This document shows positions 21,621 through 56,870 of a DNA stretch of 64,000 nucleotides, in pieces (the stretch's first letter is position 1; every line of letters starts with the position of its first letter). The notes below the pieces were generated by a model. It made no database searches, was not told where the DNA came from, and saw only the letters and a program-made list of their open reading frames with translations. This DNA comes from Anthoceros angustus (Eukaryota; Plantae; Anthocerotophyta). The stretch spans positions 186,001 through 250,000 of the forward strand of contig VJWM01000135.1 of NCBI GenBank assembly GCA_010909165.1, read 5' to 3'. The position numbers and the translations under genes were made by a program.

Positions 21621-22777
21621 ATTTTGTATTCATAATTAGCTGAGTAACATTTGAGTTTCAACTCATCGCAAATAGCCAGACACTCTCGTTGTCCTTTTCA
21701 TACGCTAATGGCAAAAGCAGGACTATGATATAAGTTTCTATTTCTATGAAATCCAACGACGAAATTTTGTAAGATGCTATCTTGTAATCTTAAAATGATT
21801 CTTCTGTACAATTCTGGGTGACTACTTATGTGAAAGATATTTTTTGTTGATTTAGTTATATAGATCCTTTGAATAAGCTATCACAAATTGTCCAAGGTTG
21901 GGCGACAGCTAGAGCGACGACATCCAAGGTCACTTAGAATGAGGGAATGCAAGTAGGCCACCTCTGCATCCACTTGCCTTCAAAATACGTAGGGCGTTGG
22001 CTAAGAACCTTATAAAAATATATCAATTTATCATGCACGAAGACATATACATGGAGCGGGTCTATCTCTCTCCTGTTTTAGCTCGGCATTTTTTCTGCTG
22101 TGAGCATCCATTACTTCTACAGGACACAACTAGAGATATAGTTTATCAATCCTTGATATGCCTCCATATGCGCTATTTAAATGTAGAACTTAATTACTCT
22201 TTCCATTGGTATCCTTGGGGTCTCATATATGTCCTATGCTATATGGGTTCACCCTACCTTCCTTCTCTCAATGGAGTGCAGTTTATCAATTACATGTATA
22301 TAATATGTGCAGGAGAATGCACAGATCCACGATTTAGATAGGATGTGTCTCCTTGTATGAAACAAGCCTGCAAGAGGTTTTTTTGAGGTGAAAAAACCAT
22401 GGGAAGAGCCCATCGAGAATGGGACAACCAAAGTATGAAACAAGTATCACGTCTTCTTCTGAAGAACTTAGTTGCAGCCTGAAAATTCATGGATTCCTTG
22501 GCCGACACAGCAGTCCACGCCCGAGAGTTGTCCCTCCTGGCTGCGGGACACATCCAGAGTTGTTCCTCAGGCTACCGGGCACAAGAAGTAATGTGCGACC
22601 GAGGGGGAGGCCGCAAGAAAGCGGGTGCTTCACCCGGGAGCAGATGTGGTGCCCAGCCTTCTGCGAATCCTGTAACCGAGTGCAGCGGCGAGGCGGTGCC
22701 AGGAGGGACCACGGGATCCTGACTTGCAAGACCGTTAGCTGATATTTCGAGCAGCTGTAGCATACATATTGCATGCC

Positions 22778-25700
22778 ATGAGAGACTGGCCATCCACCGG
22801 TCGCCGGGCTGCATCCAGCTGCTCGTCGCCGACAAATTCGTGTATGGGAAGTGGACCGAGGAATCGAATTGTGGGCTTGTTGGCGCGCGGGTTGGCATTG
22901 TGCAGCCGCACCGAGGCGCCCTCGGCTCACCTTGATTTGGGGACCCAACGGCTGGCAGGCGAAGAAGGGTTGAGGGGAAGCGGTGTAAGGAGCCCAGCAC
23001 TTCCCGGAACACCTTTTGCCGGGGAAGGAGTTTCCAGCGATGGCCGGCGCCAGGAGCAGGAGCTCTTGTGGCGGCAATTTTTTCTGGACCCTAGCCTGTG
23101 GTGGGATAACAGGCGGGGGAAGAGGAGCCCCAGTGCTCCTGACTTCCGGCGTAAGGGCTCCGGCGAGGTCCTCTGGTTGGACAGCTTTTCCAAGCCGGCT
23201 TGGGTGGATGAGCAGCTGGTTGCTTTGGATATCCAGACAGGGCGTGGTGCATCTTCTTCCAAGTCTAGCTTTCCGGATATGCCAGCCTGCGTAACAACTG
23301 GGATGGTGAACACGTTATGTCAGGAGGGGAAGCTCATTGAGGCAGTGGGAGCCCTGGAATTTTTGGTGCATACAGAGTGTCCTATCTCTCAGACTCTGTT
23401 TTATAATGTGCTGAAGCTGTGTGCCGCTAAGAAGGATCTAGTTGCGGGTCGACGAGTTCATGATCTGACTCTGAAGCTTGGGTATGAGTCGAATACATAC
23501 TTGGGGAACCATATCTTGCGCATGTATGCATCTGGAGGCCGGTTAGAAGAGGCCATGGATGTGTTCACCAGCGTGGGCAAAGCAGATACCTTCATGTGGT
23601 CTTCCATAATCTCTGCACATGCTAAACATGGGAAACCTGATGAGGCTATTGAACTGTACCATAAGATGCGGAGCTCGGATGTGAAGGCAGATGCTCACGT
23701 CTATATAGCTGCTCTTCAAGCGTGTTCTTTCGCTGCCGATTTGGAATCTGGCAGAAAGGTGCACTCTGATGTGTTGCACAGTGGTATTCAGTCTAACATG
23801 TTTATCGGGAACAGCTTGGTGGACATGTATGCAAAATGTGGCGAACTGGAAGCTGCACGCCGGGTTTTTGACAGCTTGGCCACAAAGAATGTGGTGACAT
23901 GGACTGCGCTTATAGCTGGGTATGCAGATCATGGGCTGGGTTCGGAGGCGCTTGCGTTGTATGGAGAAATGGAGCGAGAGGGTCTGGTTCTGGCTAACCA
24001 TGTTACTTTTACTTGCCTGTTGAAGGCATGTACAGCAACTGGTGCTTTACATGAGGGCAGGCAGTTACACTTGCAGATAGTGGAAAGAGGACAGCTGCAA
24101 AGCGACTTAGTGGTGGGCAACTGCCTTGTGGACATGTATGCCAAATGTGGCCAACTAGAGGAAGCACGCCAGGTTTTTGACAGCTTGGAAAGAAAGGATG
24201 TGGTGACATGGACGGCCCTTATAGCTGGGTATGCACAGCAAGGGCTGTGTCAAGAGGCTCTTGTTGTGTATGGCCAAATGGAGCAGGAGGGCCTGGTGTT
24301 GGCTAACCATGTCACTTTTGCTTGCCTTCTGAAGGCGTGTGCCAGCACTGGTGCTTTACAAGAGGGCAGGCAGCTGCACTCGCAGATTCTGAAAGGAGGA
24401 CAGCTACAAAGAGACATTCTGGTGGGCAACTGCCTGGTGGACATGTATGCCAAATGTGGCGAACTCCAAGATGCACGGAAGGTCTTTGATAGTTTGGCTT
24501 CAAAGGATGTGGTGACATGGACGTCCCTGATAGGTGGGTATGCTCAGAAAGGGCATTGTCAAGAAGCTCTTGATCTGTATGCTCGAATGGAGCAGGACGG
24601 CCTGGTTTTGGCTAACCAGGTTACTTTTGCCTGCCTCCTCAAGGCCTGTGGGAGTACTGGTGCCTTACGAGAGGGCAGGCAGCTGCACTCACAGATTGTA
24701 GAAAGAGGACAGGTAGAAAATGACACGCTGGTGGGCAACTGCCTGGTGGACATGTATGCCAAATGTGGCGAACTGGAAGATGCACGTCAGGTCTTTGACA
24801 GTTTGGCCCTAAAAGATGTTGGGTCGTGGAATGCCCTGATAGCAGGGTATGCACAGCAAGGACTGTGCCAAGAGGCGCTTGACCTGTGTGGACAAATGGA
24901 GCAGGAGGGCCTGATTTTGGCTGACCGCTGTACTTTTGCTGGCCTGTTGAAGGCCTGTGGAAGCGGCGGTGCCATACAGCTAGGGAGGCAGCTGCACTCA
25001 GAGCTCGCGGGGAGAGGAGAGCTAGAAAATGACATACTGCTGGGTAACTGCCTGGTGGACATGTATGCGAAATGTGGTGAAATGGAAGATGCCCGCAGGG
25101 TCTTTGACAGTTTGTCCACAAAGACTGTGGCGACATGGACAGCCCTGATATCCGGGTTTGGCTCTTGTGGGGAAGGTCACAAAGCCCTGGGTTGCTTTGA
25201 GGAGATGCTAGCAGCCGGTATTGAGCCCGATGATGCCACGTTTGTTTGCCTTCTAATAGCATGCAGTCATGACTGCCTGGTGGACGAAGGTCGCAAGTAC
25301 TTCGAAGCCATGGTTGCACAACACGGCATCAAACCTACCGTTGCCCATTACAATTGCATGGTTGATCTCTTCGGGCGTGCAGGCCATTTAGCTGAGGCAG
25401 AGAAGATGCTACTATCGTGTGAAAGCCAAGACAATGACGTGGGCTTGACATCTCTGCTGAATGCTTGCAAAAGCCACGGGGACACCGAGAGGGCGACCCG
25501 GTGTTTTGAAAGCCTGGTCAGCTTGGACCCCCAGCAGGCGTCCGCATATGTCCTCATGGCCAATGTGTACGCAGACGCAGGTCGGTGGACAGACGTAGAA
25601 AGGATAGAAACTCGGAGAATAGCAGCAGGAGCCAATAAGAAACTTGCAGTAGCAGGCATCGAGATCAAGAACGAGGTACATACATTCATGGTGGGAGAAA

Positions 25701-26041
25701 CCAGGGACGATATTTCCCTCAAACTAGCGAGCATGAACCTCAGCCTGCAGCAGGAAGGGGGCCACACACCACACACTCAACTGGTGCTGAAGCCACTGTC
25801 TGAGAAGGAAAAGAACGACATGCTTTGTGGGCATGCTGAGAAGCTAGCTCTGGCCTACGGTCTCTTGCACACTCCGAGTGGCACACCTCTGCTGGTCACC
25901 AAGAACTTACGCATGTGCAGTGACTGCCACAGCTCCACCGAGGTCTTGTCCAGGGTTGAGAAGAGAGACATTGTTGTGAGGGATGCCCACCGTGTGCATC
26001 GATTTGCAGCTGGCTTCTGCAGCTGTAAAGGCCGACCCTGA
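22778..26041 (+). CDS. Intronless PLS-class PPR protein with E1-E2 and DYW:KP ('GRP') domain, a putative U-to-C RNA editing factor, with an N-terminal OSB-type PDF motif
   Basis: About 20 P/L/S motifs (e.g. KDVVTWTALIAGYAQQG / ANHVTFACLLKAC / VGNCLVDMYAKCG), then P2-L2-S2-E1-E2. The C-terminus reads KKLAVAGIEI...LCGHAEKLALAYGL...KNLRMCSDCH...HRFAAGFCSCKGRP*. First ATG is 22778. Confidence 0.95.
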   Translation: MRDWPSTGRRAASSCSSPTNSCMGSGPRNRIVGLLARGLALCSRTEAPSAHLDLGTQRLAGEEGLRGSGVRSPALPGTPFAGEGVSSDGRRQEQELLWRQFFLDPSLWWDNRRGKRSPSAPDFRRKGSGEVLWLDSFSKPAWVDEQLVALDIQTGRGASSSKSSFPDMPACVTTGMVNTLCQEGKLIEAVGALEFLVHTECPISQTLFYNVLKLCAAKKDLVAGRRVHDLTLKLGYESNTYLGNHILRMYASGGRLEEAMDVFTSVGKADTFMWSSIISAHAKHGKPDEAIELYHKMRSSDVKADAHVYIAALQACSFAADLESGRKVHSDVLHSGIQSNMFIGNSLVDMYAKCGELEAARRVFDSLATKNVVTWTALIAGYADHGLGSEALALYGEMEREGLVLANHVTFTCLLKACTATGALHEGRQLHLQIVERGQLQSDLVVGNCLVDMYAKCGQLEEARQVFDSLERKDVVTWTALIAGYAQQGLCQEALVVYGQMEQEGLVLANHVTFACLLKACASTGALQEGRQLHSQILKGGQLQRDILVGNCLVDMYAKCGELQDARKVFDSLASKDVVTWTSLIGGYAQKGHCQEALDLYARMEQDGLVLANQVTFACLLKACGSTGALREGRQLHSQIVERGQVENDTLVGNCLVDMYAKCGELEDARQVFDSLALKDVGSWNALIAGYAQQGLCQEALDLCGQMEQEGLILADRCTFAGLLKACGSGGAIQLGRQLHSELAGRGELENDILLGNCLVDMYAKCGEMEDARRVFDSLSTKTVATWTALISGFGSCGEGHKALGCFEEMLAAGIEPDDATFVCLLIACSHDCLVDEGRKYFEAMVAQHGIKPTVAHYNCMVDLFGRAGHLAEAEKMLLSCESQDNDVGLTSLLNACKSHGDTERATRCFESLVSLDPQQASAYVLMANVYADAGRWTDVERIETRRIAAGANKKLAVAGIEIKNEVHTFMVGETRDDISLKLASMNLSLQQEGGHTPHTQLVLKPLSEKEKNDMLCGHAEKLALAYGLLHTPSGTPLLVTKNLRMCSDCHSSTEVLSRVEKRDIVVRDAHRVHRFAAGFCSCKGRP

Positions 26042-26196: not shown

Positions 26197-26277
26197 CGTG
26201 GTCGGCAGGATTCGAACCTGCGCGGGCGAACCCACATGATTTCTAGTCATGCCCGATAACCACTCCGGCACGACCAC
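26197..26277 (-). tRNA. trnS-AGA: tRNA-Ser(AGA)
   Basis: GTGGTCGTGCCGGAGTGGTTATCGGGCATGACTAGAAATCATGTGGGTTCGCCCGCGCAGGTTCGAATCCTGCCGACCACG: anticodon arm CATGA-CT AGA AA-TCATG, long variable arm, TTCGAAT T-loop, oligo-T downstream. Confidence 0.96.
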
Positions 26278-26477
26278 TGGGGTATTCTGACGGTGAGAAC
26301 TTTTAGAATTAATACCTTAAAGTTTTCACTTGTAAAATAGCAAAAATAAAAATATCTATGCCCCAGCCAGGAAGATAGTTCCCACACGCGACTCGACGCG
26401 TGTGGGAGCGATGGCGTAGTGCTTTGTAGAGGTGGTGGTGTGGGCATATCGAGCACCTGCAGCAGCGGGAGGGCGCG

Positions 26478-27666
26478 ATGGTGGACAAGGTGGTGATCGT
26501 GGGGGGCGGGCTGGGGCTGGCGGCGGCGCTGCAACTGCGGAGCCAGGGATCGACGCGCATGTCTACGAGCGGAATGAGAGCATTCTGGGAGGGCCGGGGA
26601 CGGGGACCATCGTGTCGCTCTTCCCCAACGGGTGCCGGGCGTTGGCGCAGGCGCAGGCGCAGCTGGTGCGGCGGATGGAGGAGCAGGGGCTGACGGACGG
26701 GGCGTCCCTGGTGGTGAACAACAAGGGGAGCCGATCCCGGGCGGGCTGGGGCTCTCCACCTGGATGTGGCCACCCACGGCTACCCGATGGTGGCCGTTCT
26801 GTGGCGGACGCGCTGCGGGTGCTGGCGGAGGCACTCCCCAGGACTGTCTCCACACGGACCACGAATTCCTGGACGTCACCTCGGGCCCGGACTCCGTCAC
26901 CGCCGTCTTCCGCCATCGCCAGGAGGTTGTCCCGGTGACGGGCGCGCTGGTGGTCGGGGCGGACGGGATCCGGTCCCGCGTCCGGGAGTGCCTCTTCGGG
27001 CCGGTGCAGCCGCGGGACCAGGGCAGGACGATGTGGCGCGCCGTGGTGGACAGGGAGCTCTGCGGGGGGATCCCGGCCGTGCAGGGGCACGCCGGGGCCG
27101 TGGCCGGGGCCGCTGGCGGAAGGACCGTCTTCATCGTCGTCGGGGTGAAGCAGACGCTGTACTGGGCCCTAAGCCTGGCGGACGACTCCTCCGACGGCCG
27201 CGCCAAGGAGCGGTCGCGGGACCAGGAGCACGCCAAGGAGCGGGTCTTGGAGGAGTTCCGGGACTGGAGCTTCGCTGCCGACATTGTGCGGGCTACCGAC
27301 CCCGGGCTCATCCTGGAGCGGCGCGTGATCGACCTGCCTGTGCTGCCGAAATGGTACAAGGGCCGCGTTGTGCTGCTCGGGGACGCCGCGCACGCCGTGC
27401 CGCCGTCCCTCGGCCAGGGCGCTAACCTTGCCTATGAGGACGGGCTGGAGCTGGCCAAGCAGCTGTCGTCCCCCGGGGCCGCCGAGAATGTGGAGGCCGC
27501 GCTCCGCAGGTACGAGCAGGTCCGGATTCCTAGGGTAGAGCGGGTTTCCGACGAGTCGCAGAAATTGTTATCCGCCAGAGCTCAGGATTTCTACGACTGG
27601 CTCTACTCCTACGACACTCTTGCTTCTGCTGCTGCTGCTGCTCCTGCTCCTGCTGCTGCCCCTTGA
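26478..27666 (+). pseudogene. FAD-dependent monooxygenase (salicylate hydroxylase/zeaxanthin epoxidase-like), intronless, with about 5 apparent frameshifts in the first 370 nt; pseudogene or assembly error
   Basis: KVVIVGGGLGLAAAL..G(fs)IDAHVYER, LVVGADGIRSRVR and WYKGRVVLLGDAAHAVPPSLGQGANLAYEDGLELA motifs. The N-terminal part is scattered over three frames at G/C runs. Confidence 0.8.
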
Positions 27667-53054: not shown

Positions 53055-56006
53055 ATGCAGCCAAGTGAGCATGATGCAGCCCTTTTAGCACATACTGCTA
53101 GTCGTGTACTCGATGTGCATGTGTTTCTGGTTTACTCAATCAGACATATTCCCAGTGCACCTCATCGGCTTCGCAAGGATATAAGTTCGTTCACGAGAAT
53201 GTCTTTCTGGGAGGAGTGGGGGCCAGGAGGTCTTGTGGCTACGGTCTTCACTGGGCCAAACGTTGGGTTGGGTACCAGGCGACATCGACAGACCTCCCGT
53301 TGCTCGCCTGACTTCCTGCACTGGGAGTCCCAGGAGACCCTCTCGGTGAAAAACTCCAACAGGCCAGGTTGGGTGGTGGCTGCTCTGGGTATGCACATGG
53401 GGCGTCATATCCCGACATGGAGCTTGCCGGATGACCGCCGGTCTGCAGTAACGGCTGAAACTGTGAGCGAATCATGTCAGCACGGCAAGGTCAGGGAAGC
53501 TGTTGAGGCTCTGGGAGTTCTGGTGCAGACGGACTGCCGTATTTCCTCATCTCTGTTTTTTTCTGTCTTGAAAACGTATGGGTGTAGAAAGGATCTGGTT
53601 TTGGGTCGCCGTGTGCATGCTCTCAGTGTGGAGAAAGGGTATGAGTCGGACACGTTTCTGTGCAACCACATCCTGAGAATGTATGCCTCTCATGGCAGGT
53701 TGCAGGAAGCGATGGATGTGTTCACCGTGGTTGCCAATCCAGATGCCTTCATGTGGTCTTCCATAATTACTGCTTACGTGAAACATGGGCAAGCTAAGCA
53801 GGCCATACAGCTCTATCAGCAGATGCGGAGATCGGGTGTGAAGCCAGATGGCCATGTGTTTGTAGGAGCCCTTCAGGCTTGTGCAAGGGCAGGAGACTTG
53901 GAAAGTGGGCAGCAGGTGCATGCTGATGTGCTGGCCAGTGGAGTTGAGCCTGATTTGTTTGTTTGGAATTGCTTGGTGGACATGTATTGCAAGTGTGGGA
54001 GCTTGGAAAATGCTCAAAGGCTGTTTGACGAGCTTCCATGCAAAGATGTGGTGACATGGAACGCCATGATAGCAGGATATTCGCAGCAGGGCATGGGGCA
54101 GGAAGCCCTTTATCTTTTCAGCGCTATGCAGCAAGAAGCCATTGCTGCGCCCGATTCTGTGACATTTGTGTCTTTGCTGCAGGCCTGTGCAAGTGTGGGT
54201 ACTACTGTTTTGGAGAAGGGTAAGCAGCTTCATGCACAAATTGGAGAACAAGGGCTTCACGCAGATGTTCTTTTAGGTAGCTGTCTGGTAAATATGTACG
54301 CAAAGTGTGGCAGCCTTGAGGATGCTCAAGGGGTGTTTGACAGACTTGATCAAAAAAATGTGGTGACGTGGACCTCTCTGATAGGAGGGTATGCCCAGCA
54401 GGGCATGGGCCAGGAAGCACTTCGCCTTTACACTGCTATGCAAGAGGATGGCATTGTTGCGCCCGATTCTGTGACTTTTATGTGCCTCCTGCAAGCATGT
54501 GCAAGTGTGGGCACTTCAGCTCTGGAGCAGGGGAAACAGCTTCATGCACAGATTCGGGGACGGGGGCTTCACACTGATGTGTCTGTGGGCAACAGTTTGG
54601 TGAACATGTATGCAAAGTGTGGCAGCTTGGAAGACGCTCAAGGAGTGTTTGACAGGCTTCCTCTCAAAAATGTAGTGACATGGACTACTCTGATTGCAGG
54701 ATATTCCCAGCAAGGTATGGGCCAGGAAGCCCTTTGTCTCTACAGTGCCATGGAACAAGAAGGCCTCGCTGCACCTGATTCTGTGACATTCGTGTACCTC
54801 CTACAGGCATGTGCAAGTGTGGGTATACCAGCTTTGGAAAAGGGGAAGCAGCTCCATGCACTGATCGGAGAACAAGGGCTTCATGCTGATGTTGCTGTGG
54901 CAAACAGCTTGGTAAACATGTATGTGAAGTGTGGCAGCTTAGACGATGCTCAGGTCGTGTTTGGCAGACTAGGCCACAAAAACGTGGTGACTTGGAATAG
55001 CATGATAGCAGGATACTCTCAGCTGGGCATGGGGCAGGAAGCCATTCATCTTTACCGGGCTATGCAAGAAGAGGGCAATCTTGAGCCTAGTACTGTGACA
55101 TTTGTGTGCCTCCTGCAGGCATGTGCAAATGTGGCAGCGTTGCATCTGGGAAGGCAACTCCATGCACAAATTGAAGAACAAGAGCTGCAAACTGTTCTAG
55201 CCATTGGTTTGATCAATATGTATGCCAAGTGTGGGAGCATGCTTGCTGCACAGCAGGTATTTGAGGCATTGCCCAAAAGAGACATTGTCTCTTGGTCTGC
55301 ACTGATTGCAGGATACAGCCGTCAAGGAGACAGTGAAGTGGTCTTTGACTTAATTCGCAGGTTGGAAGGGGATGGCCTACAGCCAGATGGCGTCATATCA
55401 TTGAGTGTACTGACAGTGTGCAGTCATGCGGGTCTAGTGAAGAAGGGGAGAGAGTACTTTGAATCAATGACAAAAGACAATGGCATCACTCCTACGATGG
55501 AGCACTACGCTTGCATGGTGGATCTCTTGGGACGTGCAGGCGAACTGGACGAGGCACTAGCATTGGTAAGGACAATGCCAGCACTTCCCGATGCTGCAGT
55601 TTGGCGGACACTACTGGGTGCTTGTCAGAAGTGGAGTAACGTGGAGGTTGGACGTTATGCATTTGATGAAGTAGTGAAACTGGACGAAAACGATTCAGCA
55701 CCATATGTGTTGATGTCAAACATCTACACAAGTGTGCAGATGTGGGAGGAGGCCCAGGAGATGCAGGTAAGAAGAAAGGGAAGGGGGGCCTGGAAGCAGC
55801 CAGGCCAGAGCTGGTGGACAGACATGTACGGACTGGTGCATACTTTCGTGGTTGGGGATATAAACCATCAGGAGAGCGAAGGTATATATTCAATGCTGAA
55901 GGATGTAGTCTCAAAACTGAAGGAACAAGATGACGTGCCGCATGTGGACCCGCCATCACAGGACATCATTGGAGAGGACGCATTTGTCCGGGTACAGCTT
56001 CAATGA
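53055..56006 (+). CDS. Intronless PLS-class PPR protein, E1-E2-E+ with WW-type PG box, ending before the deaminase catalytic motif; degenerate N-terminal PDF motif
   Basis: P/L/S triplets (KDVVTWNAMIAGYSQQG / PDSVTFVSLLQAC / GNSLVNMYAKCGSL), E motifs, then KQPGQSWWTDMYGLVHTFVVGD...EDAFVRVQLQ* with no HxE or CxxC. The true start may be a downstream Met. Confidence 0.93.
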   Translation: MQPSEHDAALLAHTASRVLDVHVFLVYSIRHIPSAPHRLRKDISSFTRMSFWEEWGPGGLVATVFTGPNVGLGTRRHRQTSRCSPDFLHWESQETLSVKNSNRPGWVVAALGMHMGRHIPTWSLPDDRRSAVTAETVSESCQHGKVREAVEALGVLVQTDCRISSSLFFSVLKTYGCRKDLVLGRRVHALSVEKGYESDTFLCNHILRMYASHGRLQEAMDVFTVVANPDAFMWSSIITAYVKHGQAKQAIQLYQQMRRSGVKPDGHVFVGALQACARAGDLESGQQVHADVLASGVEPDLFVWNCLVDMYCKCGSLENAQRLFDELPCKDVVTWNAMIAGYSQQGMGQEALYLFSAMQQEAIAAPDSVTFVSLLQACASVGTTVLEKGKQLHAQIGEQGLHADVLLGSCLVNMYAKCGSLEDAQGVFDRLDQKNVVTWTSLIGGYAQQGMGQEALRLYTAMQEDGIVAPDSVTFMCLLQACASVGTSALEQGKQLHAQIRGRGLHTDVSVGNSLVNMYAKCGSLEDAQGVFDRLPLKNVVTWTTLIAGYSQQGMGQEALCLYSAMEQEGLAAPDSVTFVYLLQACASVGIPALEKGKQLHALIGEQGLHADVAVANSLVNMYVKCGSLDDAQVVFGRLGHKNVVTWNSMIAGYSQLGMGQEAIHLYRAMQEEGNLEPSTVTFVCLLQACANVAALHLGRQLHAQIEEQELQTVLAIGLINMYAKCGSMLAAQQVFEALPKRDIVSWSALIAGYSRQGDSEVVFDLIRRLEGDGLQPDGVISLSVLTVCSHAGLVKKGREYFESMTKDNGITPTMEHYACMVDLLGRAGELDEALALVRTMPALPDAAVWRTLLGACQKWSNVEVGRYAFDEVVKLDENDSAPYVLMSNIYTSVQMWEEAQEMQVRRKGRGAWKQPGQSWWTDMYGLVHTFVVGDINHQESEGIYSMLKDVVSKLKEQDDVPHVDPPSQDIIGEDAFVRVQLQ

Positions 56007-56369: not shown

Positions 56370-56870
56370 ATTTTGTTTCCCAAATGTAAAGGTTGTGCAC
56401 TTCTTAAGGAAGGAGAAGACATAAGAAGCAACTATTTCGTTTTTCAAGTGTGATTGGCACGTCATTCCTTAAGGAAAGGACAAGACAAAGCGAGCAATGA
56501 TTTTCATTTTCCAGATATGAAGGCTGTGTATTCCTCAAGAAAGGACATGATCAAATGAGCAAAGATTTTTGTTTTCCAAATGTGAAGGCCCTCCTTAAAG
56601 AAGGACAAGACGAAATAAATAACGATTTTTGTTTTCCAAATGTGAAGGCACTCCTTAAGGAAGAACAAGATGAAATGAGAGCTGCATTTCAAATAAGAAG
56701 ACCTTCCTTGATAAGACAAAATGATCGATGATTTTTGTTTTCCAAATGTGATGACACTCCTCAAGGAAGGACAAGGCAAAATGCGCAACGATTTCCAATT
56801 TCCAAATATGAATCTCCTCTTCAAGGAAGGTGAAGTATAAGATAAAATTATGAATTGTTTTGGTTTTCCA
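56370..56870. repeat. Degenerate tandem array of about 60-65 bp units
   Basis: Recurrent tttttgttttccaaatgtgaaggc...ctccttaaggaaggacaag cores at about 56372, 56435, 56501, 56566, 56626, 56732 and 56792. Confidence 0.75.

Follow-up and report, generated by a model that had tools for sequence, protein, structure and literature searches.

A probable vestige of an OSB-type PDF domain ahead of the repeat array of an E+-type PPR gene in the hornwort Anthoceros angustus

We analysed a window of 64,000 nucleotides from the hornwort Anthoceros angustus (GenBank assembly GCA_010909165.1, contig VJWM01000135.1, positions 186,001 to 250,000 of the forward strand; positions below are those of the window), in which two large, intact open reading frames (ORFs), both on the + strand and 30 kb apart, encode pentatricopeptide repeat (PPR) proteins of the PLS class. 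Gene 1 (22769..26041, first ATG at 22778, 1090 codons) carries an intact OSB-type PDF domain ahead of its PLS-PPR array, E motif and DYW:KP deaminase. Gene 2 (53055..56006), an unbroken ORF of 983 codons, holds at 53232-53387 an eroded counterpart of that domain. We consider it very probable that this relic is a decaying, functionless vestige of an OSB-type PDF domain. DNA and protein comparisons demonstrate its homology by descent, specific lesions and the loss of a coding-type substitution pattern.

The PDF motif is an element of roughly 50 residues found in OSB proteins, and is reported to be sufficient for single-stranded DNA binding in AtOSB1 (PMC6963530). In gene 1 it occupies 23045..23236 (+ strand, residues 93-156). 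An exhaustive phmmer search with this segment returned 703 proteins at E <= 0.001, most of them 250-500 residues long with one to many PDF copies near the C-terminus; the named matches were OSB1 and OSB3 of Populus, Euphorbia and Amborella, with E values of 1e-14 to 1e-45 per protein. A word-index search with the same region among proteins of 600-1900 residues gave no matches. A PDF profile was then compiled from 325 domains of OSB and PPR proteins among the phmmer matches, excluding genes 1 and 2. Gene 1 scored 81.6 bits and covered profile positions 5-69 of 72, as a full-length domain does, and it shares the family signature W..F..P..WWDNR..K..P..PDF...LW....P.WV. In an alignment of 40 copies, columns W12, D24, R26, K29, P32, P35, D36, L46 and W56 are invariant, and F16, P19, W22, W23, F37, W47, P54, V57 and L61 nearly so. 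AlphaFold2, run on this alignment, predicted a helix at 2-17, strands at 22-24 and 37-39, and a helix at 56-68 (predicted local distance difference test score, 92.9). No fold neighbours of the model were found with Foldseek (best E 6.2 against PDB and 2.1 against BFVD) or VIA-align wide (best Z 4.1).

A preliminary description of the window had read an eroded PDF motif in gene 2, homologous to the intact one at 22.8 kb. Its translation of 53232-53387 matches the DNA exactly, and all the codon pairs it listed (cct/cca, agc/aac, ctg/gtt, tgg/ggg, tgg/ttg, gat/ggt, aac/acc, agg/agg, cgg/cga) recur in our DNA alignment. The homology proved to lie beyond chance on four tests. In a motif-only local alignment, 13 of 43 residues are identical between the two genes, and the BLOSUM62 score of 54 was reached by none of 5000 shuffles (20.7 +/- 4.0, maximum 45). 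Against the PDF profile, gene 2 scored 21.6 bits, compared with 75-85 bits for intact copies; shuffles of its residues 1-132 gave at most 7.6 bits in 2000 trials, against 22.2 bits for the unshuffled segment. Third, tblastn with the PDF domains of PPR proteins from Selaginella, Calypogeia and Sphagnum hit the relic stretch in the same frame. Fourth, the motif stands in the same relative position in both genes, as the preliminary description had said: 21 residues separate it from the first PPR-like module (..C..G.L.EAV.AL..LV...; 53451..53720, + strand, in gene 2), which is common to genes 1, 2 and their relatives and is 63% identical in amino acids between the two genes. A hidden Markov model of this module scored 147.5 bits on residues 133-222 of gene 2, which was itself among the training sequences. 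Relic, linker, module and PPR array form one collinear stretch of homology, along which identity shows no jump. Chance resemblance within a low-complexity N-terminus, which the shortness of the stretch and its modest number of identical residues might suggest, is refuted by the shuffle, profile and spacing tests and by a test of DNA register given below with the frameshift, and we give it practically no weight. These comparisons show that 53232-53387 is homologous by descent to bona fide PDF domains.

The relic is extensively damaged. Its in-frame core (PNVGLGTRR...SPDF...ETLSV...RPGWV; 53256..53375, + strand) corresponds to profile positions 27-64, so that the second half of the domain matches alone and a full-length domain is lacking. 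GLGT now stands in place of WWDN, and Ser in place of the Trp of LW, while PDF and P.WV are kept; the loss of WWDN and the retention of these motifs agree with the preliminary description. Six of 19 conserved columns are lost, namely W12 (which is out of frame), W22, W23, D24, P32 and W47; they include four of the six Trp columns and the invariant Asp24. About half of the 19 columns are kept, among them R, PDF, L, P.WV and P19, and the signature residues of a PDF domain are thus incomplete. On the predicted fold of the intact domain, the lost residues map to helix 1 and strand 1.

The first helix survives in the DNA, in another reading frame. At 53209..53255 (+ strand), in phase +1 relative to the ORF, the DNA reads GRSGGQEVLWLRSSLG, corresponding to GRRQEQELLWRQFFLD of gene 1, and a gap of one nucleotide relative to gene 1 lies at about 53255. 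A tblastn match to this remnant in phase 1 has 9 of 21 residues identical. Over the 40 nucleotides before the gap, 26 of 40 positions are identical to gene 1 in the +1 phase, compared with 11 of 40 in frame; the best of 21 offsets in each of 2645 null trials never exceeded 23. A MAFFT protein alignment instead placed SFWEEW under LLWRQF with a nine-residue insert; it was dropped in favour of a one-nucleotide frameshift because of this difference in register. In its ancestral phase, the first helix is preceded by a stop codon 13 codons upstream. At the other end of the relic, nine nucleotides (DEQ of gene 1, three codons of the last helix) are deleted after WV. The linker from the relic to the PPR array (53376..53450, + strand) differs from that of gene 1 by deletions of 9 and 6 nucleotides and an insertion of 3 nucleotides, which keep the frame.

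Identity between the genes at codon positions 1, 2 and 3 of the relic is 0.64, 0.46 and 0.64 (39 codons). The corresponding values are 0.73, 0.76 and 0.56 for the first PPR module and 0.64, 0.81 and 0.46 for the next 300 residues. With position 2 the least conserved, a non-coding pattern, the relic bears no discernible signature of protein-level constraint.

The relatives of gene 2 place these lesions in a wider history. A search with its N-terminal 260 residues led to P0002, and a search with the whole protein led to P0222, P0167 and P0253. These four proteins from the Logan assemblies are its nearest relatives, at 46-55% identity (53% for P0222); all have an SWWTD-type box and all lack a deaminase. 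P0001, a KP/GRP relative of gene 1 with HAE and GRP, has an intact PDF domain (74.6 bits). P0002 keeps the opposite, first half within its residues 1-50: FLWYEFFSDPTQWWDSRR matches profile positions 10-31 at 13.5 bits, helix 1 and WWDSRR are intact, PDF has become PHG, and about eight residues are deleted. P0222, P0167 and P0253 show no PDF signal.

A tree was inferred with IQ-TREE (quick search) from 420 residues, the first PPR module being the starting point. In it P0001 grouped with gene 1 at a Shimodaira-Hasegawa-like approximate likelihood ratio test (SH-aLRT) support of 97, gene 2, P0002, P0253 and P0167 formed an 'SWWTD' E+ clade (SH-aLRT 86), and these two groups were united, again at 97. 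Since the two classes are sister groups and P0002 holds the opposite half of the domain, the tree bears out the earlier proposal that the fusion predates the split of the KP and WW classes. The accompanying suggestion, that the motif spread between classes, is needless given the collinear homology without a jump in identity. Secondary transfer from a KP gene into the WW/E+ class by gene conversion or exon shuffling would be helped by the proximity of genes 1 and 2 on one strand and by the local and retro-duplication through which PPR families expand (PMC13386178). It is nevertheless highly improbable: identity drops, rather than rises, in the relic, P0002, from another assembly, has a differently eroded copy at the same position, and in the tree of the repeat array the two classes are sisters.

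The simplest reading is of one ancestral PDF domain, which the KP line retained and the E+ line lost piece by piece. The ancestor of the GRP-type DYW:KP editors (gene 1, P0001) and of the SWWTD E+ clade (gene 2, P0002, P0222, P0167, P0253) would have had a targeting sequence, then a PDF domain, then a PPR array. Maintenance of the domain would have ceased in the E+ clade, leaving its second half in gene 2, its first half in P0002 and nothing in the other three members. In gene 2, a one-nucleotide deletion would have put the first helix out of frame, substitutions would have abolished the Trp-rich strand (WWD) as well as the Trp in LW, and the nine-nucleotide deletion would have shortened the last helix; given this frameshift, these substitutions and this deletion, the relic can presumably no longer fold into the helix-strand-strand-helix module that gene 1 is predicted to have. 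Without PDF function, it may persist as filler, either as part of the presequence or linker or, if translation starts at 53391, as 5' leader. The rest of gene 2 would be an intact PLS-E+ site-recognition factor which, if it behaves like angiosperm E+ proteins, depends on a deaminase provided in trans.

Several observations weigh against such a functionless vestige or its proposed origin. The codon-position comparison covers just 39 codons, and PDF, L and P.WV are still present in the relic. Upstream of 53391 no stop codon interrupts the frame for 133 codons, 88 of them in the new frame upstream of the frameshift; chance would leave all 133 codons open about 0.2% of the time, and those 88 about 1.6%. 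The relic region may thus well be translated, and could have a residual role, for example in targeting or spacing. The E+ clade itself has a support of only 86, from a quick tree search, and the three nearest outgroups, P0267, P0191 and P0175, show no PDF domain, possibly because their gene models start late.

Another reading is that the relic is a divergent, still-working PDF-like element, such as half a domain able to bind nucleic acid or a protein partner. The retained residues, the open upstream frame and the indels of 9, 6 and 3 nucleotides, which preserve the frame from 53256 into the PPR array, are in keeping with such an element. Against it stand the lost conserved columns, the displaced first helix, the low profile score, codon position 2 as the least conserved one, and the sister genes that lack a PDF domain altogether. 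We regard a working element as very unlikely, if slightly less so than secondary transfer.

Where translation begins bears on how a functionless relic would persist. Gene 2 has in-frame ATGs at 53055, 53199, 53391 and 53397, the last two within the linker (MHMGRH...TWS). As a variant of the vestige reading, translation could start at 53391 or 53397, placing the relic outside the protein as 5' leader. The gene model of P0222, the nearest full-length relative whose N-terminus differs, begins at MHIGTWS, aligned with MHMGRHIPTWS of gene 2, P0253 and P0167 likewise have short N-termini, and the relic lacks a coding substitution pattern. With a start at 53391, however, the first PPR module would be preceded by just about 20 residues, little room for an organellar presequence; the long upstream frame contains the ATGs at 53055 and 53199; and the Logan gene models are automatic and may merely start at the first ATG past a stop. 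We see the leader variant as a serious possibility, somewhat short of an even chance. Codon-usage log-odds and the G+C content of third codon positions were calculated over 53055-53390; the pre-PDF region of gene 1 itself fits the PPR-body model no better.

The preliminary description had proposed that PDF-PPR is a lineage-wide architecture of editing factors, which turned out to be an understatement. N-terminal PDF domains on PLS-PPR proteins occur in Selaginella, Adiantum, Diphasiastrum, Sphagnum and Calypogeia. Among the listed representatives of the phmmer matches, seven have an N-terminal PDF domain followed by PPR repeats; the three with names are Selaginella moellendorffii XP_024517303.1, Adiantum capillus-veneris KAI5076972.1 and one Diphasiastrum protein. 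The profile found intact N-terminal PDF domains in 21 of the best 120 relatives of gene 2, some with two or three tandem copies. In six of the 21, from Diphasiastrum, Calypogeia fissa and Sphagnum jensenii, the protein ends in a canonical DYW or DSW tail, which means that the fusion is not peculiar to KP editors. The spacing recurs in the Diphasiastrum proteins, where the last PDF domain is followed at the same distance by the same first PPR module. In a tree of PDF domains (182 domains, 64 columns), PPR-linked copies cluster, with 8 label changes compared with 37 after shuffling, although some of the rows labelled 'nonPPR' may be fragments of PPR genes. Starred branches permit a single origin, which an alignment this short cannot prove.

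Five proteins of Diphasiastrum complanatum (P0172, P0208, P0254, P0154 and P0194) carry two or three tandem N-terminal PDF domains on PLS-PPRs. An eroded copy lies beside an intact one in P0180 (73-140, 36.6 bits) and P0189 (44-122, 26 bits), so that erosion of single PDF copies is common. A possible second, older PDF-like remnant was also noticed in gene 2 (PSAPH...ISSF...FWEEW; 53142..53219, + strand, residues 30-55). Its comparison with the eroded second half of the P0002 domain, one of four comparisons tried, gave a score of 44, which was reached by 4 of 5000 shuffles, and the PDF profile gave no match there. It could be an older relic of a tandem PDF domain or could be due to chance. Among the phmmer matches, PDF-like domains also occur at 191-246 of P0045 (1526 residues, with a kinesin motor domain) and in P0077 (1063 residues, no Pfam domain); both gene models may be mis-joined.

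The decay of the motif had been tentatively linked to the absence of a deaminase from gene 2. This link found no support: of 23 proteins whose PDF domain is intact (at least 60 bits), a DYW or DYW:KP core is present in 8 and absent from 15, and retention of the domain therefore needs no deaminase in cis. Two of the 15 are clear E/E+ proteins with a PG box, and most others have the E motif alone in a precomputed Pfam list; the count of 15 is soft, as some may be truncated gene models. Intact PDF domains are thus kept in at least two clear E/E+ proteins that lack a deaminase, and probably in about fifteen.

Apart from the relic, gene 2 has the features of a PLS-class E/E+ protein, with PPR repeats (PPR_2, 2.3e-99), an E motif (E_motif, 2.7e-14) and no DYW_deaminase match in Pfam. 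The Eplus match is weak (0.0047; 17.1 bits, below the cut-off of 24), and a PG-type box, PGQSWWTD, lies at 55800 on the + strand. No HxE or CxxC remnant of a deaminase was found in any frame 3' of the stop codon; the tail ends shortly before the HxE position, like that of P0182 of Diphasiastrum. In its PLS array, E motif and PG box, gene 2 resembles E+ PLS-PPR factors, and differs from those of angiosperms in its vestigial N-terminal domain and sub-threshold E+ match. Angiosperm examples of these factors work with a DYW protein supplied in trans. We know of no vestigial N-terminal PDF domain in angiosperm E+ proteins, and to our knowledge trans-acting deaminases are not established in hornworts. 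About 400 bp past the stop codon of gene 2, at 56381-56676, are tandem repeats with units of 60-65 bp (2-3 copies, 71-92% matches).

Gene 1 has a Pfam DYW_deaminase match (6.5e-34), and its translation shows an HAE active site (HAEK) in place of HSE, CSDCH (CxDCH, including the CxxC cysteines) and a C-terminal GRP, the features of the GRP subgroup of DYW:KP proteins (PMC9478123). HAE, CxDCH and the C-terminal GRP are common to gene 1, P0001 and the hornwort DYW:KP GRP editors, from which gene 2 differs in its PG-type box and missing deaminase core. Proteins of this subgroup are candidate U-to-C editors, with activity shown for designer KP proteins only (PMC9478123). At the PG-box position (25700-25760), gene 1 reads KKLAVAGIEI where P0001 reads KKPAMAGIEV; the Pro behind the name 'KP' is thus Leu in gene 1, though HAE, CxDCH and GRP are intact. 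Directly 3' of gene 1, at 26632-27666 (+) and 26247-27359 (-), are long GC-rich ORFs that overlap each other.

The domain of gene 1 shares the family signature of OSB proteins, and the relic of gene 2 matches the second half of the profile. In OSB proteins, the PDF motif stands at the C-terminus after an OB-fold-like domain, whereas in genes 1 and 2 it is N-terminal to the PLS-PPR array; Pfam detected no OB or SSB domain in either. By domain architecture, neither gene belongs to the OSB family.

The usual account of a PPR editing factor comprises a targeting peptide, a PLS array and an E or DYW tail. Among the openly accessible papers searched, none couples PPR or DYW with a PDF motif or domain. 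The accessible descriptions of hornwort GRP proteins do not mention an N-terminal PDF domain, nor does a 2026 survey of the OSB family (PMC13393729) mention PPR partners or a 2026 kingdom-wide survey of domain fusions in editing factors mention OSB or PDF. The PDF-PPR pairing is apparently undescribed.

The relic dates the PDF-PPR fusion to a time before two hornwort PPR classes diverged, and shows that at least one clade can do without the domain while its genes are otherwise intact. It also speaks against a simple tie of the PDF domain to a deaminase in cis or to the direction of editing, and so narrows the functional hypotheses for the intact copies. For annotators, it indicates that N-terminal extensions of PPR genes in seedless plants may hide real or vestigial domains. 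More speculatively, and as a proposal we hold to be rather less probable than the leader variant, the PDF domain may be a working accessory module of PLS-PPR editors across seedless land plants, with its piecemeal loss in the SWWTD E+ clade marking a change in how these proteins operate. If so, the domain might be a clamp on single-stranded nucleic acid or a tether to the nucleoid, and the clade might have shifted, for example, from self-sufficient editors to specificity subunits inside a complex; the relic of gene 2 and the complementary relic of P0002 would then be a fossil record of that transition.

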